This document shows, one piece after another, positions 621-64,000 of a stretch of DNA of 64,000 bases. A program made the translations under genes and the position numbers. How positions within the stretch are numbered: the first letter of the stretch is position 1; the number at the start of each line of letters is the position of its first letter. The notes beneath the pieces were generated by a model that worked only from the letters and a program-made list of their open reading frames with translations, ran no database searches and was not told the DNA's origin. The stretch spans positions 254,165 to 318,164 of IMG/VR virus record IMGVR_UViG_3300042465_005589. The stretch is one strand, 5' to 3'.

Positions 621-645
621 TAATGTTATAATTATTTTATTTTAA

Positions 646-43541: not shown

Positions 43542-44315
43542 TTATCCGGCGATATTCCATGGTTTAGTTCCATTAAGTTTCTCTTCATAATTTGAAATAA
43601 AAATTTCATTTATTTTTGAAGATAACGGACTAACACCATTACATGTTATCCCACTATTATAACTGGCAATTGACATAGACGAGCCTTCACCGGAACCAAT
43701 TGTTTCTAAATAGTTGTGACGAATATCAAACTCTTCAGTAAACACAGATAGGTCATCCCATATTTTAAAAAAATTTTCTTCAGTTCCTCTGTCTTTTTTA
43801 ATAATCCATTTACCTTCCAAATAGTGTTCTATATAATCTTCAGGATGACCTTCATGAAACACTTTTTTTAATTTAAAACCATTTTTTTCCGCAAAATCAA
43901 TACCTTCTTGACCATATTTAGTATTTCTTCTACCTTGTACTTCACAAGTACTAACATCGTCTGAACAATATGTGAACCCTATATTACCAAACGTTGCAAA
44001 AATATGTAGACCAGAGTTTATATCTGATAAAAAATCAATGTTATCAGTATCTTTAATAAAGACATCAGCATCTAAAAAAACTGCAGTGTCATAGTATTTT
44101 AAACATTCTTTCATCACCACTTTTTTTTCATGAAATGAAAAATATGGTTTAGTATATTCTATTACTGTTAACAAATTATTTGGTGTATAATGTTCCGGAG
44201 AATTAGTCATTACAAAAATATGATGTCCCATATCATTTATTTGTTTAATTAATGAATCTCCAAATGTTACATATTTTTCACCATATGTTAATGTACAAAA
44301 CGCAAAATTACTCAT
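43542..44315 (-). CDS. GT-A-like glycosyltransferase
   Basis: FLDADV DxD motif; start MSNF at 44315 gives an ATGA overlap; paralog of domain 2 of the upstream gene. Confidence 0.55.
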   Translation of the reverse strand: MSNFAFCTLTYGEKYVTFGDSLIKQINDMGHHIFVMTNSPEHYTPNNLLTVIEYTKPYFSFHEKKVVMKECLKYYDTAVFLDADVFIKDTDNIDFLSDINSGLHIFATFGNIGFTYCSDDVSTCEVQGRRNTKYGQEGIDFAEKNGFKLKKVFHEGHPEDYIEHYLEGKWIIKKDRGTEENFFKIWDDLSVFTEEFDIRHNYLETIGSGEGSSMSIASYNSGITCNGVSPLSSKINEIFISNYEEKLNGTKPWNIAG

Positions 44316-46042
44316 ATTTCCTCTATTAATGTCCAATCTTTATCCCCATACCAATCATAAGTGTGGTAAATTTTAATTTTATCTTTTTTATCAAAAAATA
44401 ACTCATTTGTTTTTTCACTATTAAAGTGATATACAACATCATTAATTTTAAACTCATGGTCTAAAAACTCAACATTATTTTTTAAATTCCAATTAAAATT
44501 TAAAACAAATAGATTATCATTTAATTCAAAAATTGAATAACTTAAATCTATCTTGTGTTCTTTAAATTGAATGTCTGATACCTTTTTTGAAATTAGTTTA
44601 CCCTCACTTAATTGTACTGTTTTTCTATCAGGAAAATTTTTAATATAATCACTAATAAACCCACCATAAAAGTTATATTTAATATCTTCACCAAGTTTAT
44701 TAGATATGTTGTGTGAATTAATTTTAAGTCCGCTTTTAGCTACACATAAACCAACAATATTACCCTCACCAACACCTATTTTATCCACCCCATTAATCAT
44801 TTCATGAGCATCTAAAGATGATGATAATTCTTTCCATGTATCTAAAAAAACTTTCCATTTATTTTCTTCTTTTGAAACAATTAAAACACCTTCTTGATAG
44901 TGATAAGCATCATTTATTGGGATATTTAATTTTTCGGATATACTTAACGCTAATTCACCATAACCCACAACCCTATTAGTAATGTCTTTACTTTCAAAAA
45001 AACCTCCGGAAGGTCTTGATATTAATCCCCAATCCCAAGATGGGTGAAATCCTGGTTTAATTATTCTAATTAAATTGGTGTAACAATTTTTATAATTTTT
45101 AAAAAATAATCTACAATCAGAATCAACATATACAACAGCATCTTCATATTTAAATCCCTCTTCAAAACAAATTAATTTATCATTATATGAGAATTTTTTA
45201 TTAGGATAATCTACTAATATAACATTATCTAAAGAATCATAGAATTCTTTTTGGTCTGTAACTATTAATATTTTTTGTTTAAAATAATTTAAATCAAAAG
45301 CCAATTTAACCGCGTTTTTATTAGCTGTTTCACCATGAGCAATAGTTGTAAAAATATAGTTTTGTTTTTTATAGTTTTTTTTACAACTATTATTTCCTTG
45401 TATATCTGTTGTAAAATCATTTTTAACTTTTACAATTCTTTCATTTGAAACATACACATTGAATTCAGATAATCTAATATATAATGCGGTATCAATTTGA
45501 TTATCTATATTAGTAAGTTTTTCGATTAATTTTTTTGCACCATTTGGGGATATTATTAAAGATGGTAAACACGTTACAATACCTTTAGGTATAGATAAGT
45601 TTTTACTAAATGGATGTTTTTCTACATCAGTATCACCATGACCTAAATAACAATAATCAAAATCATTAGGTAATTCAGATAAAATCATCTTTAATTTATC
45701 ATCAAATGAATTATCAATTTCCACATCATCTTCAAAAGTTATTGCAGGAGAATCTAATTCTGATATTTTTTGAAATAAATTAAGATAACTCATTAAAACC
45801 CCCAAACCACCTTGAGTCATTGATAATCCCCAAGCGGTTACTGTATCCATTAAAATATCTTGGATTGCATTTTCACTTAATATACCTTCTTTTAAAGTTC
45901 TTGGATTTATAGTAGACCCATCAACTGCGTCAAACCTTTGATAAATATTTTTTAAAATAGTACTTTTATTTAATTGATTTTCTATAAATAACTTCCTATC
46001 CGTTCTTTTTTCTAAATTAATATAAAAACAATGTTTTAGCAT
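44312..46042 (-). CDS. GT25-family glycosyltransferase fused to a second DxD domain and an accessory domain
   Basis: YINLEKRTDR, RFDAVDG, FEDD (GT25); YVDSD in domain 2. Confidence 0.75.
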   Translation of the reverse strand: MLKHCFYINLEKRTDRKLFIENQLNKSTILKNIYQRFDAVDGSTINPRTLKEGILSENAIQDILMDTVTAWGLSMTQGGLGVLMSYLNLFQKISELDSPAITFEDDVEIDNSFDDKLKMILSELPNDFDYCYLGHGDTDVEKHPFSKNLSIPKGIVTCLPSLIISPNGAKKLIEKLTNIDNQIDTALYIRLSEFNVYVSNERIVKVKNDFTTDIQGNNSCKKNYKKQNYIFTTIAHGETANKNAVKLAFDLNYFKQKILIVTDQKEFYDSLDNVILVDYPNKKFSYNDKLICFEEGFKYEDAVVYVDSDCRLFFKNYKNCYTNLIRIIKPGFHPSWDWGLISRPSGGFFESKDITNRVVGYGELALSISEKLNIPINDAYHYQEGVLIVSKEENKWKVFLDTWKELSSSLDAHEMINGVDKIGVGEGNIVGLCVAKSGLKINSHNISNKLGEDIKYNFYGGFISDYIKNFPDRKTVQLSEGKLISKKVSDIQFKEHKIDLSYSIFELNDNLFVLNFNWNLKNNVEFLDHEFKINDVVYHFNSEKTNELFFDKKDKIKIYHTYDWYGDKDWTLIEEI

Positions 46043-46048
46043 ACTTTA

Positions 46049-47296
46049 TTATAAATTACCGGTTATTCTATCACGCCAACCTTTTGACGTACTATATGGC
46101 CATACAACCCAATATTTTGGTTTTGATGTTGTTTGGAAATCTCTCCAAACTTTACAATATCCGTCATGGTCTTTCATCATAGCATTTATCTCATTAATAT
46201 CGGCATCTTTTCTATAAAGAGTTTCATCATTTTCATTATGAAATGCTACAACCCAAAATTCATAATCTTTTTCCGGTACTTGTTTAAATGAGATATCGAT
46301 ACAATGTTTGAAAATACTCGCAAAACTTGATAACCATTCTTCTTCCGTCTCATATATGGTAGGGTTTGGTGCGTATTTTTTATCTAAAGTATATTGTTGG
46401 ACAGCTCTATTTGAAAATTTAAGACCTGAATAAATTTCATAATCTTTTAATGTTCTTTCAGTTCCAAATCCATACTTACTAAAATCCATAGTAACTTCTT
46501 CACCGTCCATTCCAAAAAGCTGTCTATTCTTTTTGTGAGATAACTCATTCTTTTTACCCCACTCTTTATCATCATCCCATTGTTTGGTTCTACCCTTACG
46601 AGTATATTCGTGCCAAATAACGGTCTTATGTGGGTGGAATAAATCATATCCGTGAGTGAATGCTCTAACAGCAATTGATATTTCTTCCCCGTGAAAATAA
46701 AATTCAGGGTCGTGTTGAACCTCCACACTAAATTGACCTAATGTGAATGCCATGTGAGCAGAATAAAAACGAGAAGTGATTGGTTGTTTTAATTTTTCCC
46801 AACCAGGTATTGTTTCAGGTAAGAAGAATACCGCACCTTCAGGAATGAATCTATCAAAAGACATTCTCCACGGCTCTTTAACTCTACCTGCCGGGTCATT
46901 CTCGGGGTCAAATGATGAAACATACCCCGTTAACAAAGGTTTCTTAAATCCTTTCTTTTGAAGTTGTTTAATCATTTTGATTAAGGTAGTATCCCAATCT
47001 TTTTCAAATCTCATATGAGAATCTATTTGAAGTGTATACTCCTCACCATCATATAATTGTTGTACTTGATTTCTTGCCCAACAAACACCTTTAGCGTCGG
47101 AATACAAAACATCCTTAACTCTAAATCGTTTATCTTTTTTAAATTTTTCTAAATTATCAAACCCATCTTCAGGGTGATATTGACGACATATACCTATTCT
47201 TAAGTTTTTAGGTCTTTTAGCATTTTCAATCATGCTATCAAGTGTCGGGATAAGCTGGGGGTCACGATAGGAGGCTATCTGTACAAATATTTTCAT
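46049..47296 (-). CDS. GT60-like polypeptide N-acetylglucosaminyltransferase
   Basis: IFVQIASYRD, GVCWAR, LQIDSHMRF, FHGEEI, GYDLFHP...WHEY match the GT60 (Skp1/mucin GlcNAc transferase) pattern. Confidence 0.8.
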   Translation of the reverse strand: MKIFVQIASYRDPQLIPTLDSMIENAKRPKNLRIGICRQYHPEDGFDNLEKFKKDKRFRVKDVLYSDAKGVCWARNQVQQLYDGEEYTLQIDSHMRFEKDWDTTLIKMIKQLQKKGFKKPLLTGYVSSFDPENDPAGRVKEPWRMSFDRFIPEGAVFFLPETIPGWEKLKQPITSRFYSAHMAFTLGQFSVEVQHDPEFYFHGEEISIAVRAFTHGYDLFHPHKTVIWHEYTRKGRTKQWDDDKEWGKKNELSHKKNRQLFGMDGEEVTMDFSKYGFGTERTLKDYEIYSGLKFSNRAVQQYTLDKKYAPNPTIYETEEEWLSSFASIFKHCIDISFKQVPEKDYEFWVVAFHNENDETLYRKDADINEINAMMKDHDGYCKVWRDFQTTSKPKYWVVWPYSTSKGWRDRITGNL

Positions 47297-47435: not shown

Positions 47436-49364
47436 TTAGTTTATAAAAGAAAGAAATTTTTTATTACTACTACTGTAAAGTACCCAAGAAGCACCATAGT
47501 TAGAAGATATTTGAGTTTGAAACGCAATTGTAGTTCCAAGCATATATTGTCCAGAATTAGATATATCTGTTTTGATAATAGAACTACCAAAAGTATTCGT
47601 AGTCCAACTAACACCAAAATTATTTGTGGTAATAACTCTATTATTAGTAGCACCTACTATTCCATATCTTCCATCATAACTTAACTTAAGGTCTTCATTA
47701 AAATCTTGACTAACAATACTCATTATTGACCAAGTTGCACCAAAATCAGTACTTCTGTAACTATTTCCAACTGCTGAAACTAACATCATATATAATCCAT
47801 TTCCTGATACTGCAACACCTTGAAAATTACTAGAATTTGCGGCTGATTGCGAAGGAAAAATATTTAATGTTATATTTGTAAAAGTTATTCCATAATTTGT
47901 AGATAGTAAAACATATTTTAATGAACTTGAATCATAACCTGCAATAATAACATATTGACCATCCCACGATACACTAGATTGGATAATTAATGTAAAAGCC
48001 ACAGGAAATGATGCAGGACTCCAACTTGTTCCAAAATCACCACTTCTTAAAAGAGTGCCTCCTGATTCAACATACATATATTGTCCATTTTTAGATATTG
48101 AAGTCTCCCCAATAAAACCAGAACCCACCCCAATAGGTGTTGAGTAAGAATTACCATAATCTGAAGATATCTTTACTTGTAAAGGAGAAGTTGCTCCTGC
48201 AGCCGCTATAGAGTATTGGTAATTATCGGAAGCATTTATTCCATAATTTGTAGTGACGCCAACAGACGTTAGTTGACTTATTTCAACAAGTGTATCATCA
48301 TATATTCTAAAAAATGGAGATGAATTAGATGTACCTAACATATCCCCTACTCCAAAAACAGGTGTAGGTATTGATGTTGGAGTAGGTGTTGGAGTCGCAG
48401 TTGAGGTTGGTGTTGCCGTTGGTGTAGGTGTAGATGTCGGAGTAGATGTCGGAGTTGATGTTGGCGTCGCAGTCGGTGTTGGTGTGGATGTCGGAGTAGA
48501 TGTTGGTGTTGATGTTGGTGTTGCCGTTGGAGTTGATGTTGGAGTCGCAGTTGGTGTAGGTGTAGGTGTTGGAGTCGCAGTTGGTGTTGCCGTTGGTGTA
48601 GGTGTTGGTGTAGGTGTAGGACAAGGATTTAAAATTTGACAAGTATTAATATCCGGTTGACTATTTAATAAAATGTATGAATACTGATTCGTTGAGGTTA
48701 TTGGTGATATTGATGTTACACAACCAACATATCCACTACTTTGAACATAATAAACCCCTGACAATGGAGAATAAGATGTAGGAATATTATAAACTATAAA
48801 AGTGTTTGATGGGTTACAACTATCTTGGAAATACCCCACAATAGGTGCTAATGTTTGTGTTGGAGTAGTTGTTGGTGTTGCAGTAGGTACTGGTGCACAA
48901 GTATTATCAACACACACCTCATTAATCAGAATGTTTACCCCCACATCAGCAGAAGGTAATCTACCGCAATAATATAAGGTAGTCCCTGATTGAATAACAC
49001 TGTTTAACACAACGTTATTACATTGGGTTAAACTAAAGTTTAAAGTTCCCGAAGTTGTATTTTCAAATGATATACAATTACAAACAACAACCATTGTTGG
49101 AGTCGGAGTTGGTGTTGTTGTTGGAGTTGGTGTTGGTGGTAATGGACAACTTTCTAATAAAAATTCTTCACACCCTATTGAATCAGTCACAACAACTAAA
49201 ACCTGACTAGCACCTTCTAATTGAGAAGGGATTGGAAGTTCTAATGTTGGAGGAACAGAAACAACACCGGTTGCAACCACATAACAATACGTTAATGTTA
49301 AATCACATATTGATATATCAAATGGTGAGTGTCCGTTTAAACTGGTTATTTCTATTACTTGCAT
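47436..49364 (-). CDS. Pro-Thr repeat virion-type protein with C-terminal Asp-box (BNR) beta-propeller
   Basis: Start MQVIEI at 49364 (motif at 49369-49376); three PT tracts; six S/T-x-D/N-(F/Y)-G-x-(S/T)-(W/F/Y) repeats. Confidence 0.7.
48361..48620 (-). repeat. Pro-Thr(-Ser/Ala) coding repeat, ~86 aa
   Basis: [20 protein letters not shown]...PTSIPTP in the translation. Confidence 0.9.
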
Positions 49365-49468
49365 TACAATAAATATAGTTAGAATTATTTTACCATAAAT
49401 ACTTAACAATATTAAAGTTTACTATGGAACTTTATTAGTAATTTATTATTTTTATAATAAAAAAAAAT

Positions 49469-52400
49469 ATGTCGTTAAAGATTAACCATTACGATTTTAT
49501 TGAAATTGGTACGTCAGATTTTGATACTTTAATTGAAACCTCCAATGACAATACTGTCGGTATTAGTATTGAACCTATAAAATATTACATAAATAGATTA
49601 CCTGATAAACAGAATATTATTAAAGTCCAAGCGGCATTATCAACAACAGATGGTGAAGTCGATGTGTACTATATTGAAGATTCTAAAATAGAAGAGAATA
49701 ACTTACCTTGGTGGGTTAGAGGAAGTAACTCAATAAATAATCCTCACCCTTTTGCTATTAAAGAATTAGGTGAAGAATTATACAATAGTTTGGTAACTAT
49801 TGAAAAAGTTCCAACAATTAGTTGGGAAACATTAATTAAAAGATATGATGTTGGTTCAATCGGTTATCTAAAGATTGATACTGAAGGTCACGACCATATC
49901 ATCTTCAGAGATTTTTTAAACTATTGTAAAGAACATTCATTTCCAATCCCAAACAAAATAACACTAGAATATCACGATGGTGTGTCAAACAAAGTTGAGA
50001 TTGATAAATTAATATCGGAATTACCTGAATATCAAATTATCAAACACATTAGTGATATTACATTAATGAAACCTCTAATACCGAGAGTAATACATCAAAC
50101 ATATAAAACTAATGATTTACCAACAGAAATAAGTGAGGTAGTTCAAAGGTTAAAAGATATGAATCCAACTTTTGAGTATAAATTCTACAACGATAACGAT
50201 TGTGTTGAATTTATTAAAGAAAATTATGATGAAGAAACTCTTAATCTTTATTTAAGTATTAACCCAAATTATGGGTCGGCTAAATCTGATTTTTTTAGAT
50301 ACCTTTTAATGTATAAAGTTGGTGGTGTTTATTTGGATATTAAAAGTTGTACTACTAAACCTTTGGAAGAAGTTTTATTACCAACCGATGAATATCTATT
50401 AACTCATTGGGAAGGATTGGATTGGGCAGATGAATTAAAATATTATTTTGGCGAATTTCAAAATTGGCATATTATCTGTAAACCAAATCACCCATTTTTA
50501 AAAAGGGTAATTGAAATTGTTAAAGACAATATTAAAAATTATATTGGTGGGTCGGATAAATATTCTGTGTTAAGATTGACAGGTCCAATCGCTTATAGTA
50601 AAGGAATTATTGAACTTATATCTCAACATAAGAAAAATAGTGTTGATTCACCCGTTAGAGAATTTTTATTAGAAAACGAGATTGGGTTACAATATATGTC
50701 AACCACAATACATCATCATAATCTAATTGATAGTTCGTATTCAAAAAGAGAACCTTTAATTTTAAAAGATAAGGTTGAGAAATCATATCTATTATATGCA
50801 ACCGAAAACTATTTGGATGTTGCAAAGATGTGTATTAAATCAATCCGAGAATATAGTGATTTACCAATTTTCTTATATCTTATTAATTCTAATAAAGTTG
50901 TGGATATTAAAGATGTTGCAACCATAAATTGGAATGTAGAATTAGTTGATGATAATTCTGATAGATACATTCAAGAGGGTGACAATTTTTACATTAATAG
51001 AACCAATAAAACGATTTATAACATCTTAATACAAAAACCATTAATCACTAAAGACGTTTTATCTAAATACACTAAAACGGTTGCATTTATTGATTGTGAT
51101 TCAATTGCAACACCATATGTTGATAGAATCTTTGACTTATACGATAATGATAAAGATTACCCTTATTTTGTTGAAGGGATTTATGATTTTCTACACGTAG
51201 GTGAACGAGGTGGTGCTATGACTAGAGATGATATGTCAACCACGTTGGAACATCCGGCGTGTGAATTATTTAATGTTAATCAGTATGTTAGAGAAAAATA
51301 CCGACAAACAGGTTATTATGTTGCAAATGAAAAATGTATTGATTTTTTATACGAATGGTATCAAATGTGTTCTCACCCTGAAGTATTAAATAATATACCA
51401 TATTATGCGGCATATAATGAGGAGACCATCCTAAATGTGTTATTGTGGAAAAAATTAATATTTGATGGATTACCTTACATTTACGCTAACGGAAATTTAG
51501 AATTGATTGATAATATCTATTCAAACTACAATATTAGTGAAGAAAGTTTATGGATTAAGATTCCAAATAAGAAAGATGATTTGTTATTTATTCACGGAGA
51601 AAAGAACATTTTAGAAATGGGTAAAATAATATCAAAAATTAAAAACCATAATAAAGAAAAAATTAAAGTATTATTCTTGGCACCACATCTGTCAACCGGA
51701 GGGATGCCATCATTCCTATTAAAACGAATCGAATCGTTATTAGAATATTATAAAGATAAAACGGAATTATTTGTTGTGGAATATTCTAACCATAGTGACC
51801 ACTATGTGGTTCAAAAAAATAGAATTAAAAAATTAATACCTCCATCACATTTTTGGACGTTAGGTGAAGATAAAAACGAATTAAAGAAAATTATTGAGGA
51901 AAATTATTTTGACATAATTCACTTGGATGAAATGATTGAAGATTTTGATGCTCATAATAAATTATCAAATGAGTTAATGAATTTCATTTATAAAAATGAC
52001 CGAACTTGGAGAGTAGTGGAAACTTGTCATAACGTTGTATTCCAACCGGAAAAAGATAAAGTGTTTCATCCTGAAGCATACGCTTATTGTTCACCATTTC
52101 ATAAAGAATCAACATTCTTGAATATGCCATCGTATGGTGAAGTAATTGAATTTCCGTATAACCCTACAATTGTAATAGATAAAGAAAGTAATAAAGAAAA
52201 ATTAGGTTTAGACCCAAATAAAATTCACATTATAAATGTTGGATTATGGACACCAGGTAAAAATCAAGAAGAAGGTGTTGAGATTGCAAAATTAGTTGAG
52301 GGTATTCACCCTGAATTAGAATTCCATTTCATTGGGAATCAAGCACCTAACTTTCAAGATTATTGGATACCAATTATGAAAGATTTACCATCAAACGTTA

Positions 52401-53812
52401 AAGTATGGGGGGAGAAAGATAATGTTAGTGATTTTATGTGTGCCGCTGATGTATTGATGTTTAACTCAACTTGGGAATGTAATCCGTTAGTATTAAGAGA
52501 AGGTATTTCTTATGGATTAAAAATTTTAGCAAGAAACTTACCTCAATATATGGATATGTTTACACCTTATATAACACAATTGTCAGGTGATATTTTTGAC
52601 ATGAAAAATCAACTTTTAGATTTAATTAAAGATGAAAGTTATTACGAATTCCCAACATATAGAACAAAAGAATTTGCTGAAAAAAATTACGAGTTATACC
52701 AAAAAATATTAAACGAACCAATTAAAAAACAAACCATGATAGATAATGAAGTACAAATATTCCAACATTTTGTTAAAGAACCATTTTTAGAAATAAAAGG
52801 AACTGGAGACAAAGATTACAATGTTAAATTCTTTGATGAAGAAGGTATTTGTCATTATGAGAATACCATAAAACCAAATCATTGGGTTAAATTAAATAGA
52901 AGTTATTACACCAAATGGAGAGCAGTTGTTACTCGAGATAATGAGGTAATTTATGATAACACTATGGATTTAACAAATAAAAGAGTTTACATATCTTTCG
53001 ATAGTAAATCTTTAGGTGACTCGATTGCTTGGATTCCTTATGTTTTAGAATTTAAAAAGAAACACGATTGTAAAGTTATTGTATCTACATTTTGGAATCA
53101 TTTATTTGAAAATGAATATCCTGAAATTGAGTTTGTTGTACCGGGAACGACCGTACATAATCTTTATGCTATGTACACAATCGGATGGTTCTACAATACA
53201 GATAAAGAACCTGTATTACCAAACACAATACCATTACAACAAACAATTACTAACATATTAGGATTAGAATTTAAAGAGATTAAACCTAATATACACAACA
53301 CCATTCACCCAAGACCTTATCAAAAGAAATATGTTACCATAGCAACTAACTCAACAGCAGGGTGTAAATTTTGGACAAGAGAAGGATGGCAATCACTAAT
53401 TAACTATCTTCATAATTTAGGATATAAAGTAATAAACGTATCCAAAGAAGATAATCCGTTTGAAAATGCAAACAAGATTAAAAACACCTCAATTCATCAC
53501 ACAATGAATGTAATTCACCATAGCGAATTCTTTATCGGATTATCTAGTGGTTTATCTTGGTTAGCTTGGGCGTTAGGTAAACAAGTTGTAATGATTTCTA
53601 ACTTTACAAATGAGGAACATGAGTTTATGTTTAATTGTACTAGAATTGTAAATCATTCTGTTTGTAACGGATGTTGGAATAAACCTGAATTTACCTTTGA
53701 TAAAGGTGATTGGAATTGGTGTCCTGTTAATAAAGGAACTGAAAAACAATTTGAATGTCATAAATCGATAACACCGGAAATGGTTATTAATCAAATACAA
53801 CATTTACTATAA
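49469..53812 (+). CDS. Multidomain glycan-building enzyme: FkbM-like + GT32-like + DxD domain + GT4-like + Aah/TibC-like domain
   Basis: IEIGTSD/LKIDTEG; IPRVIHQT...SDFFRY...GGVYLD; FIDCD; LAPHLSTGG...GKNQ; SKSLGDSIAW...GLSSGLSWLAWA...CNGC...WCP...FEC. Confidence 0.75.
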   Translation: MSLKINHYDFIEIGTSDFDTLIETSNDNTVGISIEPIKYYINRLPDKQNIIKVQAALSTTDGEVDVYYIEDSKIEENNLPWWVRGSNSINNPHPFAIKELGEELYNSLVTIEKVPTISWETLIKRYDVGSIGYLKIDTEGHDHIIFRDFLNYCKEHSFPIPNKITLEYHDGVSNKVEIDKLISELPEYQIIKHISDITLMKPLIPRVIHQTYKTNDLPTEISEVVQRLKDMNPTFEYKFYNDNDCVEFIKENYDEETLNLYLSINPNYGSAKSDFFRYLLMYKVGGVYLDIKSCTTKPLEEVLLPTDEYLLTHWEGLDWADELKYYFGEFQNWHIICKPNHPFLKRVIEIVKDNIKNYIGGSDKYSVLRLTGPIAYSKGIIELISQHKKNSVDSPVREFLLENEIGLQYMSTTIHHHNLIDSSYSKREPLILKDKVEKSYLLYATENYLDVAKMCIKSIREYSDLPIFLYLINSNKVVDIKDVATINWNVELVDDNSDRYIQEGDNFYINRTNKTIYNILIQKPLITKDVLSKYTKTVAFIDCDSIATPYVDRIFDLYDNDKDYPYFVEGIYDFLHVGERGGAMTRDDMSTTLEHPACELFNVNQYVREKYRQTGYYVANEKCIDFLYEWYQMCSHPEVLNNIPYYAAYNEETILNVLLWKKLIFDGLPYIYANGNLELIDNIYSNYNISEESLWIKIPNKKDDLLFIHGEKNILEMGKIISKIKNHNKEKIKVLFLAPHLSTGGMPSFLLKRIESLLEYYKDKTELFVVEYSNHSDHYVVQKNRIKKLIPPSHFWTLGEDKNELKKIIEENYFDIIHLDEMIEDFDAHNKLSNELMNFIYKNDRTWRVVETCHNVVFQPEKDKVFHPEAYAYCSPFHKESTFLNMPSYGEVIEFPYNPTIVIDKESNKEKLGLDPNKIHIINVGLWTPGKNQEEGVEIAKLVEGIHPELEFHFIGNQAPNFQDYWIPIMKDLPSNVKVWGEKDNVSDFMCAADVLMFNSTWECNPLVLREGISYGLKILARNLPQYMDMFTPYITQLSGDIFDMKNQLLDLIKDESYYEFPTYRTKEFAEKNYELYQKILNEPIKKQTMIDNEVQIFQHFVKEPFLEIKGTGDKDYNVKFFDEEGICHYENTIKPNHWVKLNRSYYTKWRAVVTRDNEVIYDNTMDLTNKRVYISFDSKSLGDSIAWIPYVLEFKKKHDCKVIVSTFWNHLFENEYPEIEFVVPGTTVHNLYAMYTIGWFYNTDKEPVLPNTIPLQQTITNILGLEFKEIKPNIHNTIHPRPYQKKYVTIATNSTAGCKFWTREGWQSLINYLHNLGYKVINVSKEDNPFENANKIKNTSIHHTMNVIHHSEFFIGLSSGLSWLAWALGKQVVMISNFTNEEHEFMFNCTRIVNHSVCNGCWNKPEFTFDKGDWNWCPVNKGTEKQFECHKSITPEMVINQIQHLL

Positions 53813-54489
53813 TGGATTATAATAATTTTGATTGGGGATGGATGGGACAAAGTGAAGAAGGTTTGTTTCATAAAGAACAAATAACTCAAGAAACATTTGT
53901 TGATAAAATATATGAAAAGTTTTTTGAAGTTTCTGAAGGTGATATTGTTTTAGATTTTGGTGCTAGTGTTGGACCATTTACGTATAGTATTTTATCAAAA
54001 AAACCAAAACACGTATATTGTCTTGAACCAAGTGAATTTGAATTTCCCACATTAGTTAATAATACAGTTGGTCATCCGGTAACACCAATATTGAAGGGTG
54101 TCTCAAATACCAACACATATACTGAGGGTAATGACATTTATGGTGGTTCAAAACAAATGGAAGGAATTACTTTTAAAAAACTTTGTGAGTTATATAATTT
54201 AAAAACCATAGATTTTTTAAAAACAGATTGTGAGGGTGGTGAATACGATATTTTTAATGATGAGAATTTTGAATTTATTAAAAATAATGTCAAAAAAATC
54301 ACCGGTGAGTGGCATTTAGGTACACCAATTTTAAAAGAAAAATTTAAAAAATTCAGAGATACTTACTTACAATACTTTATAAATGTTGAGGTGTACTCAA
54401 TAGATGGTGTTAATGTAAAATGGAATTTAATGTCTGACAATTTTTTAGAACACTATACAGAAATAATAATACACATATATAACGTTTAA
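53812..54489 (+). CDS. FkbM-family methyltransferase
   Basis: VLDFGASVG, LEPS, FLKTDCEGGE. Confidence 0.85.
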   Translation: MDYNNFDWGWMGQSEEGLFHKEQITQETFVDKIYEKFFEVSEGDIVLDFGASVGPFTYSILSKKPKHVYCLEPSEFEFPTLVNNTVGHPVTPILKGVSNTNTYTEGNDIYGGSKQMEGITFKKLCELYNLKTIDFLKTDCEGGEYDIFNDENFEFIKNNVKKITGEWHLGTPILKEKFKKFRDTYLQYFINVEVYSIDGVNVKWNLMSDNFLEHYTEIIIHIYNV

Positions 54490-54493: not shown

Positions 54494-55312
54494 ATGAAAC
54501 AAATATTTTTTAACTCTTCCCTACCTAGAAGTGGAAGTACATTAATTCAGAATTTATTAGCTCAAAATCCTGAAATTTACTCAACACCAACATCAGGGTT
54601 GGTAGATTTTGTAATCGCTTGTAAAAACAATTACAATCACTCACAAGCATTCCAAGCTCAAAATCAAGATGAAATGACCAAAGCCTTTGTCGATTTTTGT
54701 CAAGATGGTATGCAAGGTTATTTTAAAAGACTTACTGATAAACCAATCGTAATCGATAAAAGTCGAGAATGGGGAATCAATTATGGTTTATTGGAAATGC
54801 TACAACCAAACCCAAAAATTATTTGTATGGTTAGAGATGTTAGAGCTGTCTATAGTTCAATGGAAAAGAATTTTAGAAAAAACCCTCATAGAGAAAATGG
54901 GATTCAAAGACCGGCAGAATTAATTGGGACAACCTTAAACAAACGTGTTGATATTTGGGCTAGTGGTGTTCCTGTTGGTGTTGCAATTGATAGGTTATTA
55001 GATACCATTCAACAAGGTATTGCCGAAAAAATGTTATTTATTCGTTACGAGGATTTAATGAGTAATCCTGAAGAAGAAATGAGTAGAATATACAATTATT
55101 TAGAACTACCATATTATGAAGGACATGACTTTGAGAATATATCTCAACTAACTCATGAAGATGATAGAGTACATGGGATATTTGGTGACCACCAATTAAG
55201 ACCTAAATTTGAAAGAAAACCGGATGATTACATGGAAGTGTTGGGGTATGAGATATCAATGAACATTAAAAATCATTATAAATGGTTTTATGACTATTTT
55301 GGATACGTATAA
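54494..55312 (+). CDS. PAPS-dependent sulfotransferase
   Basis: 5'-PSB loop LPRSGSTL, 3'-PB RDVRAVYSS, IRYEDL. Confidence 0.88.
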   Translation: MKQIFFNSSLPRSGSTLIQNLLAQNPEIYSTPTSGLVDFVIACKNNYNHSQAFQAQNQDEMTKAFVDFCQDGMQGYFKRLTDKPIVIDKSREWGINYGLLEMLQPNPKIICMVRDVRAVYSSMEKNFRKNPHRENGIQRPAELIGTTLNKRVDIWASGVPVGVAIDRLLDTIQQGIAEKMLFIRYEDLMSNPEEEMSRIYNYLELPYYEGHDFENISQLTHEDDRVHGIFGDHQLRPKFERKPDDYMEVLGYEISMNIKNHYKWFYDYFGYV

Positions 55313-55324
55313 AAAATTTTAATT

Positions 55325-55777
55325 ATGGCAATATATTGGTTTACAGGTCAGCCCGGAGCAGGTAAGACCACATTAGCAAAACAACTTAAAGATTATCTAC
55401 ACCCAAGTAATGTAATGCTTGTTGATGGAGATGACATTAGAGATGTGTTTCAGAATAAAGATTACTCTGAAAATGGCAGAAGAAAAAATATTGAGAAAGC
55501 ACAAGACATCTCATTATTTTTAGATTCAAAAGGATTTGATGTAATAGTTTCATTAGTATCTCCTTATAAAGACCAACGTGATGAATTTAAAAACAAACAT
55601 AATGTTTTAGAGTTTTACATTCACACCGAAGATATTAGAGGAAGAGAAGATTATCACGTATCTAACTATGAACCACCAACTGAAAATTTTGTGGATGTGG
55701 ATACAACAAATGTTATTGAACAAATCTCTATAGGAATAATTATAAATAAAATTAATGAATATAAATTAAATGGATAA
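55325..55777 (+). CDS. cysC: Adenylylsulfate (APS) kinase
   Basis: WFTGQPGAGKTT, LVDGDDIR, VSLVSPY, YEPP. Confidence 0.88.
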   Translation: MAIYWFTGQPGAGKTTLAKQLKDYLHPSNVMLVDGDDIRDVFQNKDYSENGRRKNIEKAQDISLFLDSKGFDVIVSLVSPYKDQRDEFKNKHNVLEFYIHTEDIRGREDYHVSNYEPPTENFVDVDTTNVIEQISIGIIINKINEYKLNG

Positions 55778-56180
55778 TTGGGAAAGAAAAACACACGTAC
55801 AAGCAGCATTCGCTTCATCATCGTCAAATAAAAAATATTCAATGTTTGTAGGTAGATGGCAACCGTGGCATCATGGTCATAGAGCATTAATTGACCAACA
55901 ATTGAATAGAGATAAAAATATCCTACTATGTGTTAGAGATGTTGAAATTGATGATAAAAATCCGTTTTCAACAGAATGGGTTATTGAAAACTTAAACAAA
56001 GAATTAAAAGACCTAATTGATGAAGGAAGATTAGTGATTCAGGTTATTCCGGATATAGAAAGTGTTAATATTGGTAGAGGTGTTGGATATGATGTTTATG
56101 AACATTTCCCTCCTGAGGATATTAAAAACATTTCTGCAACAAAAATTAGAGAACAAATGAAAAAAGACGGTAAACTATAA
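55770..56180 (+). CDS. HxGH-class nucleotidyltransferase (candidate minimal ATP sulfurylase)
   Basis: GRWQPWHHGH, KNPF, ISATKIR; coupled between cysC and DUF2061. Confidence 0.7.
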   Translation: MDNWERKTHVQAAFASSSSNKKYSMFVGRWQPWHHGHRALIDQQLNRDKNILLCVRDVEIDDKNPFSTEWVIENLNKELKDLIDEGRLVIQVIPDIESVNIGRGVGYDVYEHFPPEDIKNISATKIREQMKKDGKL

Positions 56181-56395: not shown

Positions 56396-56396
56396 T

Positions 56397-56432: not shown

Positions 56433-56447
56433 TAAAATAAGTTTAAA

Positions 56448-57146
56448 ATGGAAAATAATATTTGTGTTTATTTACATAAAAAACCTAATGGTGATATATT
56501 TTATGTGGGAATTGGGACTAATAAAAGACCTTATGAAAAATTTAGAAAAAATGTATATTGGAAAAATATAACAAATAAATACCCTAATTATATTATTGAA
56601 ATAATTGAAGAAAATTTAACTTGGGAAGATGCCTGTATTATTGAAAAACAATTAATTAGAAAATACGGTAGAAAATGTGATGGTGGTATATTATGTAATA
56701 TAACTTTAGGTGGTGATGGGGTTTATGGTTTAAAACATTCTCAAGAAACTAAAGAAAAATTAAAAAAATTATCAACCGGAAATAAAAATTGTGTTGGATT
56801 TAAACATACTGAAATAACTAAAGTAAATATGAGTAAATCTCATTTAGGTAAAATAACACCAAAAGAAGTTAGAGAAAAAATGTCAAAAACTCATTTAGGT
56901 AGACCAGGTAGAGAATCAGATAAATTAAATGTTAAAAAGGCACATATTAAAAATATAGGTAGAGTTCAAAATGAGGATGAAAAAGAAAAAAGAGCCAAAA
57001 AATTATGTAAACCAATTGAGGTTAATGGTGTAATATATGAATCAATAAAACAATATTCTGAAATAACTAATATTAACCGAAGTAAAGTTTGGCGAAATTT
57101 AAAAGACGAAAAAAATAAAAACTACAAATACATAAATAAAAAATGA
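56448..57146 (+). CDS. GIY-YIG-like homing endonuclease with NUMOD3 repeats
   Basis: CVYLH...FYVGIG...R...EKQLI...CNITLGGDG; HSQETKEKL and HTEITKVNMSKSH; promoter motif at 56422-56429. Confidence 0.8.
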   Translation: MENNICVYLHKKPNGDIFYVGIGTNKRPYEKFRKNVYWKNITNKYPNYIIEIIEENLTWEDACIIEKQLIRKYGRKCDGGILCNITLGGDGVYGLKHSQETKEKLKKLSTGNKNCVGFKHTEITKVNMSKSHLGKITPKEVREKMSKTHLGRPGRESDKLNVKKAHIKNIGRVQNEDEKEKRAKKLCKPIEVNGVIYESIKQYSEITNINRSKVWRNLKDEKNKNYKYINKK

Positions 57147-58018
57147 ATGTAATATTTTCTATAGAAGGTGGATTAGGAAAATCCATAATGGGTACGGCAG
57201 TATTAAAAGCAATAAAAAAACAATATAGTAAAGCTAACATAATTGTTGTTAGTAGTTATCCGGATGTCTTTATTGGTAATCCAAACGTTAATAAAGTTTT
57301 GACTCACGAAACAATGAGTGGGATATATGAAAAATATATCATGGGTAAAGAAGCAAAAGTATTTGTTTCTGACCCATACTCAACTTCAGATTATATTACC
57401 GAAGAAAAACATCTAATTCAGTTATGGTGTGAAATGTATGGTCTAAATTACAATGGTGAAAAACCTGAATTATTTATAAGTAAAGCCGAAAAACAATACT
57501 TTGAAGGGTTCTATAAGTTAGATAAACCAATTATGGTTATTCAACCTCATGGGGGTGCATTTAACCAACCGTTAAAATATAGTTGGACAAGAGATATACC
57601 TCAACCAATTATGCAAGACATTATAAATCATTTTGCAAATGATTACGCTATCTTACACGTTAAACGAGAAGACCAAATTATTTACGAAAATACGTTCCAA
57701 GCATTAGATTCATTTAGAAGTATTGCTGTATTATTGAGTATGGCAACAAAACGATTATTAATCGATAGTAGTGTTATGCACATTGCGACGGCATTAAATT
57801 TACCATCAGTGGTGACTTGGGTTGGGACAAATCCGGAAGTATTTGGTTTTGATATTCACAATAATATTGTTGCCAATGAACCAACCAAAACACCTGATTT
57901 AAATCATCCACATTATTCTAAATATCTGTTATTCCAAGATATTAGCACTATACCTTATAACGACCTATATGAAGTATTTGATACTCAAAAAATTATAGAA
58001 GCGATTAATCAACAATAA
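57143..58018 (+). CDS. GT9-like (GT-B) glycosyltransferase
   Basis: GGLGKSIM, IQPHGG, IDSSVMHIATALNLPSVVTW. Confidence 0.75.
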   Translation: MNVIFSIEGGLGKSIMGTAVLKAIKKQYSKANIIVVSSYPDVFIGNPNVNKVLTHETMSGIYEKYIMGKEAKVFVSDPYSTSDYITEEKHLIQLWCEMYGLNYNGEKPELFISKAEKQYFEGFYKLDKPIMVIQPHGGAFNQPLKYSWTRDIPQPIMQDIINHFANDYAILHVKREDQIIYENTFQALDSFRSIAVLLSMATKRLLIDSSVMHIATALNLPSVVTWVGTNPEVFGFDIHNNIVANEPTKTPDLNHPHYSKYLLFQDISTIPYNDLYEVFDTQKIIEAINQQ

Positions 58019-58052: not shown

Positions 58053-61000
58053 TTATTTATTTATTTTATTTTGTAATATTTCAATACCATTCCAATTTTT
58101 AATAGCATCTTTATCTTTTCTTGTTCCTATGATAAGAACGTTGTATTCTAAATCCTCGTTAGCAAATATAGTTACTTTTGTTAAATCTTCATCTACTTTT
58201 CCATAAGCAATTCCAAAACCTTCTTTGGGCGTTACCCAAATTTGAGTGTTTTCATTTAGGAATTTGAAATAATCTGGCAATTCAATTTCAGCAACACCAT
58301 CTACTACTTTAACAACATATCTATAAATATTATCTCCAGCAGTAGGCGATTCAACAAACGAGTGTTGTAAGTAATGAGTTTTGTTTTTTATAGGTTCTGG
58401 GTGCTTAATTCTAAACGTACCACTTGTTTTTGATAATGCTTCAACAAATGTTGTGTTATTCGCAGATGCAGAAAGGTTACTACCAATGATATGTGAGTTA
58501 TAAAAACCAGTTATATTATTATTTGTACCACCTATAATAGAATTATACTTGGCTTTATAACCACTTGAAGAACAAATTGCATTACTCTTACCACCACCAA
58601 TAAAATTAGAACAAGTATATTCAGAATTATATGCAAATATTTGGTTGGATATTCCGCCAGTTATTGTATTATTTTGAGATTCCGTAGCGTAACTTATATT
58701 GTTTATAGCGTTATTATAACCTCCCAAAATAGAGTTACCACAAGTATAAGAAGAATTAGCACTATTTCCACAAATTGAGTTACTCTGACCTCCCCCAATA
58801 ATACTTTTGATATTATGAATCATTCTATTTGTATAACCACCACTAATGGTATTCCAAGTTCCGTAATTTGTATAATTACTTCTACCACCGCCAATTATTG
58901 AATAGTCAGAACAATTAACGTTATATTGACCACCACCAATTGTTGAAAGACCACCAGATGCAGTATTACCACAACCACCACCAATATTTGAAAGAGTACC
59001 AAAAGCAATATTGCCTTGACCTCCACTAATAGTTGATTTACTACCAGAAGCAGTATTAGATTGACCACCACCAACAGTTGAATCACTATTAGAAGCAGTA
59101 TTATTTCTACCACCACTTATTGTTGAAACTAAACCAGAAGCTACATTATATTGACCACCACCAACTGTTGATGAATTGCCAGAAGCGGTATTAGGAGCTG
59201 AATAATAAGCAGAATTATAAAAATTTAATCCGCCACCACTTACTGTTGAACCAATACCAGAAGCAACATTTGATTGACCACCACCAACTGTTGAACGACC
59301 ACCAGAAGCACTATTTTGATAACCACCTCCTATTGTTGCATATGAACTTGAAGCAGTATTATTAAAACCTCCACCAACTGTTGAACGATAACCAGAAGCA
59401 GTATTTAATCTACCCCCACTAACTGTAGAATAACCATTGGAAGCAATATTACCACAACCACCTCCAACTGTTGAATAATTACTTGAAGCAGTATTATTTC
59501 TACCACCACCAATTGTTGCGTATTGATTTGAAGCAATATTACCACAACCACCTCCAATTGTGGCATAATTAGAAGCAGTATTTTGATAACCACCAGAAAC
59601 TGTTGAAAAACTACCATAAGAAGTGTTACATCGACCACCACCAATTGTTGAACAAGGACCTGAGGCGGTATTACATAAACCACCAGCAATTACCCCTAAA
59701 GTTCCGTTAACAGAATTACTATCTCCACCACCAATAAAACCTTTTACACAAATAATACTATTTGAAATACCTCCACCAATTGTGGAGTATGATGCTTTAC
59801 TACAATTTAATTTACCACCACCAATCGTTCCAAAAGTTGATGCTGTTGAACGGTTCTGTTTTCCACCACTTATGGTTGAACCTCCCGAATCATTTTGAAC
59901 AAAATTATCGGAACCACCACCAATGAAAGATATCTCACCTTCCGAGCAGTTTCTATAACCTCCACCTATTGTTGATAATCTTCCTGCGTTAAGACAAGTA
60001 ATAGCGCCTGTCAAATTTCCCGTTGTTACATTAAATGTTCCACCTGATGAATTATGTCCAATACCACCACCAATCGTTACACCTAAAGAGCAACATTCGT
60101 TTGTAGGCGATTGAATTATATTTCTTTGACCACCAGAGATTATAGAGTGTCTTGAATTTGTAATATTACAAAAACCTCCACCAACTGTTGAATATGCCCC
60201 TGATGTAGTATTTTGAAAACCACCACCAATTGTTGAATATTGACAACAAGCTGTGTTAGATTTGCCACCACCAATAAATGAGAAAACACCACTAACTGTG
60301 TTACATCGACCACCACCAATTGTTGAACTATTGCCAGTAGCAATATTAACACTACCACCCCCTACTGTTGATTGATAACTACAAGCAGTATTGTTTTGTC
60401 CACCACCAATTGTTGAACTACTACCCCAAACAGTGTTAGATTTACCACCTCCAATTGTTGCAAAACCAATAGAAGGATTTGCAACATTACAATAACCACC
60501 TCCAATTGTATTACCACCAGACGCACCATAAACTACCAAAGAGTTTGTATAAATAAGGTTACAATTACCACCAGCAATAACATCCCCAATTTTTGGGTAA
60601 GCATTATTATAATTTTGTGATGGAAATATTCTATTATATTTACCACCACCAATAAATGAAAAATAACCAGACGCCAAATTACTACAACCACCACCTATTG
60701 TTGAATAATTACAAGAAGCAGTATTAATAAAACCACCACCAACTGTTGAAGCAATATTTGAAGCAATATTATCATAACCACCGCCAATTGTTGAATAAGT
60801 ATTAGAAGCAGTATTAGCTTGACCACCACCAATTGTTGAACGAGTACCAGAAGCGATATTAGTAACACCACCACCAATAAAAGAATAAGCACCTGTTGCA
60901 CAGTTTCTAAATCCTCCACCAATTGTTGATAATCTACCAGCATTACAACAAGCAATCGTTCCGGTTAAAGTTCCTGTAGTCGCATTAAATGTTCCACCTG

Positions 61001-63998: not shown

Positions 63999-64000
63999 AC

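Follow-up and report, generated by a model that had tools for sequence, protein, structure and literature searches.

Enzymes of the BAHT family, typified by TibC and Aah, add sugars to the adhesins of E. coli and are known only as partners of virulence autotransporters in Proteobacteria. They bind iron through a four-Cys 1Fe-0S iron finger, transfer heptose from ADP-heptose to Ser, and act on folded beta-helices, which the iron finger tracks; their autotransporter substrates AIDA-I and TibA carry 19-residue strand-loop-strand repeats (NCBIfam TIGR04415). TibC is a stand-alone protein of roughly 400 aa, in which a beta-hairpin thumb with a hydrophobic tip (Phe265/Val266) joins dimers into a dodecamer, and Arg286 contacts adenine N1, is essential and is described as the basis of ADP specificity (PMC4358343). 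A further family member, BimC of Burkholderia, is paired with the trimeric (type Vc) autotransporter BimA and is reported to act through its iron finger by binding the membrane domain of BimA (PMC11499645). The LPS core heptosyltransferases WaaC, WaaF and WaaQ share the GT-B/GT9 core with these enzymes but have no beta-barrel and no iron finger. In Pro-poor collagens such as Bacillus anthracis BclA and the vent-worm cuticle collagen, Gly-X-Y tracts are rich in Thr, and glycosylated Thr can replace hydroxyproline in stabilising the triple helix (PMC11923368).

Here we analysed a stretch of 64,000 nucleotides (the window; positions 254,165 to 318,164 of IMG/VR record IMGVR_UViG_3300042465_005589) from a 318-kb lake-water phage. 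A first-pass annotation had described an Aah/TibC-like heptosyltransferase domain about 4 kb from a fibre gene full of autotransporter-like repeats, and had inferred that the phage uses this enzyme class on its own solenoid fibre, possibly with a donor other than ADP-heptose. Our analysis confirmed what had been observed, while the interpretation was supported only in part.

A TibC-type domain in a multi-enzyme ORF

In silico analysis placed the domain at the C-terminus of a 1447-aa ORF that also contains an FkbM methyltransferase, a GT32-type DXD transferase, a middle module and a GT4 domain (Table 1). The motifs lie where the first-pass annotation had put them: SLGD holds the catalytic Asp, GLSSGLSWLAW holds Ser1359 and Trp1364, and the four Cys have a spacing (CxxC-15-C-11-C) identical to that of TibC Cys339/342/358/370. 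To assign the domain to a family, profile searches were performed against NCBIfam. The whole ORF scored 282.6 bits against TIGR04414 (hepto_Aah_TibC; equivalog cut-off 200, E=4e-84), the domain alone 287.3 bits, and a search of the whole genome gave 286.3 bits, while LPS heptosyltransferase models scored only 16-30 bits against cut-offs of 170-467; the shared GT9 core was recognised by PF01075 at E=2.2e-7. The TibC crystal chains 4rap/4rb4 matched at E about 1e-50. An AlphaFold model (pLDDT 90.7), for which GenBank phage and plasmid rows were left out of the alignment, superposed on TibC (4rap) at TM 0.90 over 370-380 columns, including the N-terminal beta-barrel (eight strands in residues 5-75 of the domain), whereas WaaC, WaaF and other GT9 enzymes reached TM 0.38-0.54. 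A better alignment to LPS core GT9 enzymes together with a missing Fe site had been named beforehand as grounds for rejecting the assignment; the domain is of the TibC/Aah type rather than LPS GT9, and the Fe-site cysteines are intact. A megablast search of the ORF against GenBank phages gave no match.

To assess the conservation of functional residues, we aligned 62 distinct phage homologues with nine outgroup sequences. The residues equivalent to the catalytic base Asp110, the beta-phosphate and sugar contacts Thr226, Lys230 and Trp305 (residues 1184, 1296, 1300 and 1364 here), Phe368 and the four Cys are invariant in the 62 phage sequences, and Ser occupies the stereoselectivity position, as in Aah. 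However, two defining features of TibC are missing in all 62: the beta-hairpin thumb is deleted, and Arg286 is replaced by Thr, while Arg is found in Aah, Burkholderia and Gluconobacter. Among four MAG-contig sequences, the thumb is likewise absent from those of Ignavibacteriaceae, Saprospirales and Sediminibacterium, but the Selenomonadaceae contig keeps it. A branch with 100/99 support separates the thumb-less phage/MAG sequences from thumb-bearing, autotransporter-linked enzymes. As TibC thumb mutants that cannot form dodecamers are inactive on TibA (PMC4358343), a thumb-less enzyme must work differently; we infer that the loss of the thumb and the fusion into a 1447-aa chain argue against a TibC-like ring. 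A non-catalytic role, in which the iron finger would bind and position or chaperone the fibre as BimC does with BimA, could be considered because the four Cys are the most rigidly conserved feature. It appears very unlikely, as the catalytic Asp and the phosphate and sugar contacts are invariant and the domain is fused to other transferases. The phage fibre has no membrane anchor, whereas BimC is reported to target BimA by binding its membrane domain.

To address the putative donor, the 318-kb genome was searched for heptose precursor genes. Neither gmhA nor an rfaE kinase domain was found; one small nucleotidyltransferase scored 55.5 bits against the rfaE domain II cut-off of 181.5, which we read as a generic family resemblance. 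The nucleotidyltransferase of the window was rejected as an ADP-heptose adenylyltransferase, because its best hits are NMN-adenylyltransferase models, far below cut-off. Together with the Arg-to-Thr replacement, a donor other than ADP-heptose is plausible, as the first-pass annotation had proposed. The second GT9-like gene was rejected as a TibC paralogue (BLASTP E=0.067).

Table 1. Features of the locus, in window coordinates (strand in brackets).
Position (strand)	Feature	Basis
44312..46042 (-)	GT25-family glycosyltransferase	PF01755, E=3.9e-17
46049..47296 (-)	PF11397 'GlcNAc' glycosyltransferase	PF11397, E=9.3e-72; phrog_24687, E=1.9e-168
47436..49409 (-)	657-aa protein divergent from the enzyme gene, with Cys-rich modules, long Thr/Pro (mucin-like) linkers and a C-terminal Asp-box (BNR-like) repeat domain	Translation; weak Ycf48/BNR-type hits
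49469..53812 (+)	1447-aa multi-enzyme ORF	Pfam and NCBIfam domains; middle module, GT4 and TibC-like domain share one ORF in most of the related loci
49553..49984 (+)	FkbM-family methyltransferase domain (residues 29-172)	PF05050, E=2.3e-8
50123..50374 (+)	DXD sugar-binding glycosyltransferase region (Gly_transf_sug, residues 219-302)	PF04488, E=1.2e-10
50756..51748 (+)	Middle module (residues about 430-760); possibly a GT-A fold transferase of the GT8/Nucleotid_trans type, as a lead only	No Pfam hit at E<=1 (residues about 400-760 and linker); language-model look-alikes score 0.90 to GT8/Nucleotid_trans clusters; conserved next to GT4 and the TibC-like domain in relatives
52178..52642 (+)	GT4 (Glycos_transf_1) domain, residues 904-1058	PF00534, E=4.6e-10
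52811..53803 (+)	TibC/Aah-type (BAHT) domain, residues 1115-1445; N-terminal beta-barrel starts near residue 1095	See text
53018..53020 (+)	Asp1184, equivalent to the TibC catalytic base Asp110	Alignment; invariant in 62 phage sequences and 9 outgroups
53441..53473 (+)	Site of the deleted beta-hairpin thumb (TibC residues about 261-270)	Gap of about 10-14 columns; hairpin present in canonical BAHTs
53501..53503 (+)	Thr1345, at the position of TibC Arg286	Thr in 62 of 62 phage-clade sequences
53663..53758 (+)	Iron-finger cysteines Cys1399, 1402, 1418 and 1430	Alignment to TibC
53812..54489 (+)	Second FkbM-family methyltransferase	Profile searches
54494..55312 (+)	Sulfotransferase	PF13469, E=1.5e-22
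55325..55777 (+)	APS-kinase-like P-loop kinase	PF01583, E=5.5e-17; below the NCBIfam cut-offs
55770..56180 (+)	Small nucleotidyltransferase of the cytidylyl/adenylyl-transferase superfamily	Weak PF01467 and NMN-adenylyltransferase hits
57143..58018 (+)	Divergent second GT9-like protein (291 aa)	PF01075, E=3.4e-5; not TibC-like
58053..64000 (-)	C-terminal 1,981 codons of the fibre gene, which continues at the record start	Open frame to the record end; in-frame join across the record ends
58056..58523 (-)	Globular C-terminal domain of the fibre (about 155 aa)	Only weak matches to PHROGs of unknown function; no PDB match
58524..62075 (-)	About 65 15-residue repeats (xSTIGGGxxNxASGx), predicted beta-solenoid of the UspA1-head type	See text
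62124..63242 (-)	Collagen-like G-T-S triplets; a further run lies above 63684 and in the first 2.8 kb of the record	PF01391, E=1.7e-33

The fibre gene and its repeats

The fibre gene lies 4.2 kb downstream of the enzyme gene and is convergent with it. The GTG start at position 63683 is an artefact: the frame stays open to the window end and continues across the ends of the record, giving a gene of about 2,915 aa, and a 98%-identical relative carries the same N-terminus in an uninterrupted 2,845-aa frame. The joined gene contains 412 collagen-like triplets, with one run spanning residues 112-1020, in which X is Thr in 86% and Y is Ser in 75%, while Pro and Lys+Arg are both 0%. It is the only collagen-like gene in the 318 kb. 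Compared with the glycosylated Pro-poor collagens, X is here Thr/Ser and Y mostly Ser with no Pro at all, the tracts reach about 2,900 residues, and the candidate enzyme is of the GT9/TibC type.

To investigate whether the solenoid resembles known targets of BAHT enzymes, we determined the period of its repeats. Between positions 58053 and 63683, 67 [IV]xGG motifs were found, 44 of the 66 spacings are exactly 15 residues, and self-identity peaks at lag 15 (0.32); the repeats have a 15-residue period, not the 19 residues of AIDA-I. While AIDA-I, the neighbour of plasmid-borne Aah, hits TIGR04415 at 397.8 bits, the phage solenoid had no NCBIfam hit at E<=0.1, and no autotransporter barrel was found among the window ORFs scanned. 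The best sequence and fold matches are instead UspA1 and BpaC, both heads of trimeric autotransporter adhesins, a group to which YadA also belongs. The repeats pass Pfam PF18792 (UspA1_rep) marginally, at 27.7 bits against a cut-off of 27 in five stretches. A search of the repeat model (pLDDT 81.6) with Foldseek against the PDB gave nothing significant (best E 0.58), but VIA-align matched it to UspA1 3pr7 at Z 20.2 with 35% identity and to the BpaC head at Z 15.8; the curli CsgA solenoid scored equally well by fold (Z 20.4), and TibA reached only Z 13.4 with 6% identity. A trimeric state would fit the collagen tract in the same chain, although no YadA-type anchor, neck or stalk is present; searches of the fibre with Pfam and NCBIfam gave no hit to a YadA-type membrane anchor.

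The reading of the first-pass annotation, that the domain modifies Ser in these solenoid repeats as TibC does on the TibA beta-helix, therefore seems unlikely. In its favour, the solenoid lies in the same fibre gene, 4.2 kb away, and models as a beta-solenoid, TibA is among the fold matches, each turn exposes Ser/Thr, BAHT enzymes act on solenoids, and BimC pairs with a trimeric autotransporter. However, the solenoid occurs in only five of 61 distinct loci, and in only 5 of the 36 with enough downstream flank, while the TibC-like domain is present in all of them. The solenoid instead co-varies perfectly (5/5 against 0/31) with a cassette of sulfotransferase, APS kinase, nucleotidyltransferase and second GT9, and a second solenoid protein of this genome lies about 80 kb from the enzyme.

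Gene neighbourhood in related phages

To examine which neighbour accompanies the enzyme, we collected relatives from 222 IMG/VR contigs. Of 36 distinct loci with at least 8 kb downstream, 27 have a collagen-like ORF, and in the representatives analysed the X/Y positions are 76-94% Ser/Thr with 0-0.2% Pro. All 28 loci with both flanks have a collagen-like or a Thr/Pro-rich protein nearby. The three genomes tested from the clade without an adjacent collagen gene have one elsewhere. Adjacency persists in distant lineages with different gene order, namely Microcystis phage Mel-JY01 (39.5% identity), an Ignavibacteriaceae-MAG contig (46%) and megaphage LR756501 (47%). MAG binning hints at Chitinophagaceae or other Bacteroidota as hosts. 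In the reverse direction, 14 of 46 viral records chosen only for G-T-[ST] triplet DNA encode a TIGR04414 protein, compared to 1 of 42 for Pro-type collagen repeats (Fisher p=4e-4, without phylogenetic correction). Nevertheless, three of the six G-T-S collagen records that are at least 90% complete lack the enzyme, and in one clade the collagen gene is tens of kb away.

The Thr/Pro-rich, mucin-like protein encoded 59 bp upstream of, and divergent from, the enzyme gene might be the main acceptor instead, as Thr/Pro-rich proteins hold the same position in the clade of loci numbered L012-L023 in our set, which lacks an adjacent collagen gene. We consider this improbable, because Thr/Pro-rich proteins were found in only 13 of the 28 loci with both flanks, known BAHT enzymes modify Ser, and distant lineages (Mel-JY01 and the MAG contig of locus L090) have collagen-like rather than Thr/Pro-rich neighbours.

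Glycosyltransferases and fibre genes also co-locate in hypervariable host-recognition islands of other aquatic phages, where they have been read as host-surface modifiers (PMC7029224). The island might accordingly modify host envelope glycans or surface proteins, for superinfection exclusion or receptor masking; GT25, GT9 and GT4 families are typical of LPS synthesis, and the sulfotransferase and kinase could decorate polysaccharide. This alternative also appears unlikely: the TibC lineage is the protein-modifying branch of GT9, the predicted fold matches TibC and not WaaC or WaaF, no library hit annotates a membrane segment in the ORF, and the coupling favours Ser/Thr-type over Pro-type collagen genes in the counts given above.

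Putative function in fibre glycosylation

The sequence analysis itself shows the membership of the TibC/Aah family and the predicted fold, the invariant residues, the loss of the thumb and of the adenine-reading Arg, and the separate phage/MAG branch, and the neighbourhood data add context; a phage structural protein as acceptor fits the conserved gene context. Catalysis, iron binding, donor, acceptor, oligomeric state and triple-helix formation are inferred, in the absence of biochemical or proteomic evidence that any protein here is glycosylated. In our preferred reading, to which we assign a probability of about 0.5, the domain belongs to a phage-borne branch of the TibC/Aah protein O-glycosyltransferase lineage whose catalytic residues are intact, and which differs from TibC in the missing thumb, in the Thr replacing Arg286, and in its fusion to a GT4 and a further transferase-like module, with a DXD transferase and an FkbM methyltransferase added in this phage. 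In the cytoplasm of the infected cell, the TibC-like domain would put the first sugar on Ser (or Thr) hydroxyls of the phage's own fibre proteins, and the fused modules would extend and methylate the glycan. The most likely acceptor would be the proline-free, charge-free (Gly-Thr/Ser-Ser)n collagen-like tract of the fibre, with the flanking Thr/Pro-rich protein as a possible second one, although known BAHT acceptors are folded beta-helices and not triple helices, and the neighbouring PF11397 transferase could be the initiating enzyme instead. Dense O-glycosylation would stabilise and protect such a triple helix, as glycosylated Thr does in other Pro-poor collagens. The donor may carry a nucleotide other than ADP and would have to come from the host.

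A further-reaching possibility, which we regard as less likely than not by a clear margin, is that this thumb-less branch has switched substrate class from autotransporter beta-helices to collagen. It would then O-glycosylate the Y-position Ser of proline-free, charge-free (Gly-Thr-Ser)n tracts up to about 3,000 residues long with a donor that is not ADP-linked, and this modification would be what allows such tracts to fold into stable triple-helical fibres, i.e., a glycosylation-dependent collagen made by viruses of bacteria.

At least 222 IMG/VR contigs and about 2,700 metagenome proteins carry the enzyme in a different architecture, with a changed nucleotide-reading residue and a different class of neighbour, which widens the biology of the BAHT family. 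In the literature searched, no paper links this family to phages, and searches on phage O-heptosyltransferases, on glycosylation of collagen-like proteins in jumbo phages and on Mel-JY01 found nothing relevant. The domain provides a candidate enzyme for fibre glycosylation in abundant freshwater phages, and a monomeric or dimeric, fusion-tolerant Ser O-glycosyltransferase would be useful for glyco-engineering. It may also explain how collagen-like tracts without proline or salt bridges can be stable.

The TibC/Aah-type domain and its conserved residues

The window comprises the last 64 kb of a 318,164-bp IMG/VR virus record that is rated complete by CheckV. Matches to PHROG families (tail sheath, family-B DNA polymerase, DnaB-like helicase and ribonucleotide reductase) show a contractile-tailed phage, and its DNA recurs at 97% or more of sampled words in at least 14 lake-water metagenome runs from 2020-2024. 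Only the last 300 residues or so of the tail-sheath homologue match sheath families, the remainder being a long N-terminal extension without an assignment, and two very large ORFs of the window had no PHROG family match at E<=0.001. The coordinates of the features are summarized in the table.

Coordinates of the features discussed in the text (window positions unless another record is named)
Feature	Coordinates	Strand	Size or detail
Multi-domain ORF	49469-53812	+	1447 aa
FkbM methyltransferase domain of this ORF	residues 29-172
DXD sugar-binding transferase region of this ORF	residues 219-302
Middle module of this ORF		 	no family assignment; between the DXD region and GT4
GT4 domain of this ORF	residues 904-1058
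TibC/Aah-type domain of this ORF	residues 1115-1445
Four cysteines of the TibC/Aah-type domain	53663-53758
Fibre gene (part within the called frame)	58053-63683	-	collagen-like tract and 15-residue repeats
Fibre gene, parts at the two record ends	63684-64000, and genome record 1-2800 (locus L097)		joined ORF 2,915 aa
ORF with Thr/Pro linkers and Asp-box repeats	47436-49409	-	657 aa
Sulfotransferase, APS-kinase-like, nucleotidyltransferase and second GT9-like genes	54494-58018
Group-I-intron-type homing endonuclease (TIGR01453, NUMOD3 motif)	56448-57146
GT25-family transferase	44312-46042	-
Tail-sheath homologue	27577-30963	-	1,128 aa
Very large ORF	10805-17707	-	2,300 aa
Very large ORF	18026-23041	-	1,671 aa
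Second solenoid protein	genome record 222893-226792 (locus L096:3894-7790)	+	1,300 aa
Collagen-like frame of Microcystis phage Mel-JY01	PP395634.1 (locus L085) 1-3052		1,016 aa
Deposited Pro/Val-rich CDS of Mel-JY01	PP395634.1 (locus L085) 739-2298	opposite to the collagen-like frame

To identify the domain, the ORF was compared with Pfam and NCBIfam profiles, which divide it into the modules listed in the table. The last domain scored 282.6 bits on TIGR04414 (cut-off 200), while LPS heptosyltransferase models reached only 16-30 bits, and it matched TibC crystal chains at E about 1e-50. An AlphaFold model (pLDDT 90.7, pTM 0.90) superposed on TibC at TM 0.90 over 370-380 columns, including the N-terminal beta-barrel, while WaaC, WaaF and another GT9 enzyme reached 0.38-0.54. 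The first-pass annotation had proposed an Aah/TibC-like domain with a four-Cys set near a repeat-rich fibre, and had named a better fit to LPS GT9 enzymes or a missing Fe site as grounds for rejecting it; neither was found. The motifs and the four cysteines lie exactly where it had placed them, and its observation is confirmed.

To compare the domain with TibC, we used the features defined in the structure paper (PMC4358343): the catalytic base Asp110, Thr226 and Lys230 on the beta-phosphate, Trp305 on heptose O4, Pro300 (Ser in Aah) as the stereoselectivity determinant, Cys339/342/358/370 binding Fe, and a beta-hairpin thumb (Phe265/Val266) whose mutation leaves inactive dimers. We aligned 62 distinct phage homologues, three GenBank phages, three MAG contigs and three plasmid-borne canonical enzymes. 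Asp, Thr, Lys, Trp, Phe368 and all four Cys are invariant in the 62 phage-clade sequences, and the stereoselectivity position is Ser throughout the phage clade. Arg286, which contacts adenine N1 in TibC, is Thr in 62 of 62 phage-clade sequences. The thumb is deleted, leaving a gap of about 10-14 columns, in every phage sequence and in the Ignavibacteriaceae and Saprospirales MAG contigs, while it is present in Aah, in the Burkholderia and Gluconobacter enzymes and in a Selenomonadaceae MAG. A maximum-likelihood tree placed a 100/99-supported branch between the thumb-bearing and the thumb-less sets. The canonical plasmid genes each sit directly upstream of an autotransporter or outer-membrane protein gene; in E. 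coli that gene is AIDA-I.

The fibre gene and its repeats

The fibre gene contains a collagen-like tract (PF01391, E=1.7e-33), followed by about 65 repeats of 15 residues, xSTIGGGxxNxASGx. To assess whether these repeats resemble the known targets of the enzyme family, their periodicity was compared with that of AIDA-I; self-identity of the phage repeats peaks at lag 15, while AIDA-I peaks at lag 19. As a positive control, AIDA-I hit the heptosylation-target repeat model TIGR04415 at 397.8 bits in 18 stretches, while the 1,184-aa phage solenoid hit no NCBIfam model at E<=0.1. It did pass, narrowly, the Pfam UspA1_rep model (27.7 bits against 27). A model of 17 repeats is a beta-solenoid (pLDDT 81.6, above 90 over the regular half). 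Foldseek found nothing significant for this model, but VIA-align ranked a curli CsgA solenoid (Z 20.4) and the UspA1 head (Z 20.2, 35% identity) first, followed by CbpF and the BpaC head, with TibA at Z 13.4 and 6% identity. The repeats, which the first-pass annotation had called autotransporter-like, are therefore so only in the sense of trimeric-autotransporter heads, which fits a chain that also holds a collagen tract.

The fibre gene is cut by the record ends. The frame is open to the last base of the record, and a collagen-like frame runs off the first base on the same strand; joining the ends gave one ORF with a proper N-terminus. A 98%-identical relative holds that N-terminus (88% identity) in an uninterrupted 2,845-aa frame. 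The record is therefore a circular or permuted genome opened inside a collagen-like repeat, and repeat copies may have been lost in assembly. The genome also encodes a second protein built from the same 15-residue solenoid repeats about 80 kb from the enzyme gene, without a collagen tract and with a different C-terminal domain, which sits among Ser/Thr-rich putative tail-fibre genes about 27 kb upstream of the window.

Gene context of the enzyme in related and distant loci

To determine what travels with the enzyme, relatives were collected. In IMG/VR, 222 contigs encode relatives at 58-100% identity, and about 2,700 metagenome proteins matched at E<=1e-5, many of which JGI already auto-names 'autotransporter strand-loop-strand O-heptosyltransferase'. 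Only four GenBank phage records have the domain, and no PHROG family matches it. In most of the 80 loci fetched, the domain is fused downstream of a GT4 and usually the middle module; the FkbM and DXD modules are added only in the near kin of this phage, and two loci (L076 and L081) encode the domain alone. Short contigs with 95%, 62% and 41% identical copies of the domain (L088, L089 and L091) are binned in Chitinophaga, Sediminibacterium and Saprospirales MAGs, respectively; they are probably phage contigs and give a weak hint that the hosts are Bacteroidota.

Of 61 distinct loci, 36 have at least 8 kb downstream, and 27 of these carry a convergent collagen-like ORF of up to 3,195 aa. Seven more carry instead a Thr/Pro-rich, Cys-rich protein of about 1,000 aa, in most of them upstream and divergent, while the two with neither have truncated upstream flanks. 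All 28 loci with both flanks have one or the other, and this window has both, as the 657-aa ORF has long Thr/Pro linkers. We analyzed the composition of the collagen tracts in the joined fibre of this window, in four related loci (L006, L024, L047 and L056), in a distant Ignavibacteriaceae-MAG contig (L090) and in two GenBank phages (Mel-JY01 and LR756501). In these tracts X is Thr/Ser in 71-96% of triplets and Y is Ser in 66-92%; Pro is 0% (0.2% in L047 and 3% in Mel-JY01), and Lys+Arg is 0-1.2% in the related loci and the MAG contig, rising to about 5-6% in the two GenBank phages. The three genomes tested from the clade without an adjacent collagen gene have such a gene elsewhere.

The association survives large divergence and changes in gene order. 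Microcystis phage Mel-JY01 (39.5% identity) has an FkbM-to-TibC-like ORF (annotated CDS 1,226 aa) 1.7 kb from its G/S/T collagen frame, the Ignavibacteriaceae-MAG contig (46%) has a 1,105-aa G/S/T collagen frame about 0.55 kb downstream, and megaphage LR756501 (47%) has a smaller one 3.6 kb upstream; LR756504, however, has none within 20 kb. In Mel-JY01 the collagen-like frame is open from the first base of the record, but the deposited annotation instead calls the Pro/Val-rich CDS, which looks like a shadow frame of the repeat, and the TibC-like fusion protein is annotated only as 'methyltransferase FkbM'.

To test the association in the reverse direction, viral records were picked only because they hold seven consecutive G-T-[ST] codon triplets. 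Of these, 14 of 46 encode a TIGR04414 protein above cut-off, including 3 of the 6 rated at least 90% complete. Among control records picked for Pro-type collagen repeats, 1 of 42 does, and 1 of 12 complete ones (Fisher p=4e-4 for all records and 0.08 for the complete ones alone, counts not corrected for relatedness).

The 15-residue solenoid occurs in only five distinct loci with enough flank. These are exactly the five that also carry the sulfotransferase, APS-kinase-like, small nucleotidyltransferase and second GT9-like genes (5/5 against 0/31, Fisher p=2.7e-6, uncorrected), and they lie at three or more separate places on the enzyme tree. A sixth locus has the cassette, but its contig ends before a fibre could be seen. 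This co-occurrence suggests sulfated glycans or a mobile fibre-plus-modifier block; as the cassette lies physically between the enzyme gene and the fibre gene, simple linkage as one exchangeable block can explain it. Even so, the solenoid is not the conserved partner of the TibC-like domain. The homing endonuclease sits inside the glycosylation island, between the nucleotidyltransferase and the GT9-like gene, and similar endonuclease matches appear in a few related loci.

Putative donor and acceptor

The genome has no gmhA and no heptose-kinase domain. Together with the invariant Arg-to-Thr change at the adenine contact, this makes a donor other than ADP-heptose, which the first-pass annotation had considered possible, plausible but unproven. 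As the beta-phosphate and O4 contacts are kept, we infer that a nucleotide-diphospho-sugar of similar geometry is to be expected.

The analysis establishes the family and fold, the conservation of the catalytic and metal-binding residues, the absence of two TibC features, the fused architecture, and the statistical association with Ser/Thr-only collagen-like and Thr/Pro-rich genes. That the enzyme acts on these proteins, that Ser at Y is the acceptor, and that the fused modules extend and methylate the glycan are inferences, as is the idea that glycosylation stabilizes a triple helix lacking both proline and salt bridges, for which glycosylated Thr in other Pro-poor collagens is a precedent (summarized in PMC11923368). 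Against this reading, the known acceptors of the family are beta-helices, thumb mutants of TibC are inactive, half of the complete G-T-S phages lack the enzyme, and glycosyltransferase islands beside fibre genes in other aquatic phages have been read as host-surface modifiers (PMC7029224). The neighbouring PF11397 transferase belongs to the family of polypeptide alpha-GlcNAc transferases that start mucin-type glycans in some protists, and might be an alternative initiator for the Thr/Pro-rich protein. The GT25 family, represented here by a transferase in the window, also contains the animal collagen galactosyltransferases, but the collagen-like tract here has no Lys and the parallel is probably coincidental.

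The proposal of the first-pass annotation that the phage uses this enzyme class on its own solenoid fibre, possibly with another donor, is partly supported. The domain already carries the family name in automatic annotation, but no paper in the literature searched links the family to phages. Compared with the enzymes described so far, the phage-borne form has a different architecture, a changed nucleotide contact and a different likely substrate class.
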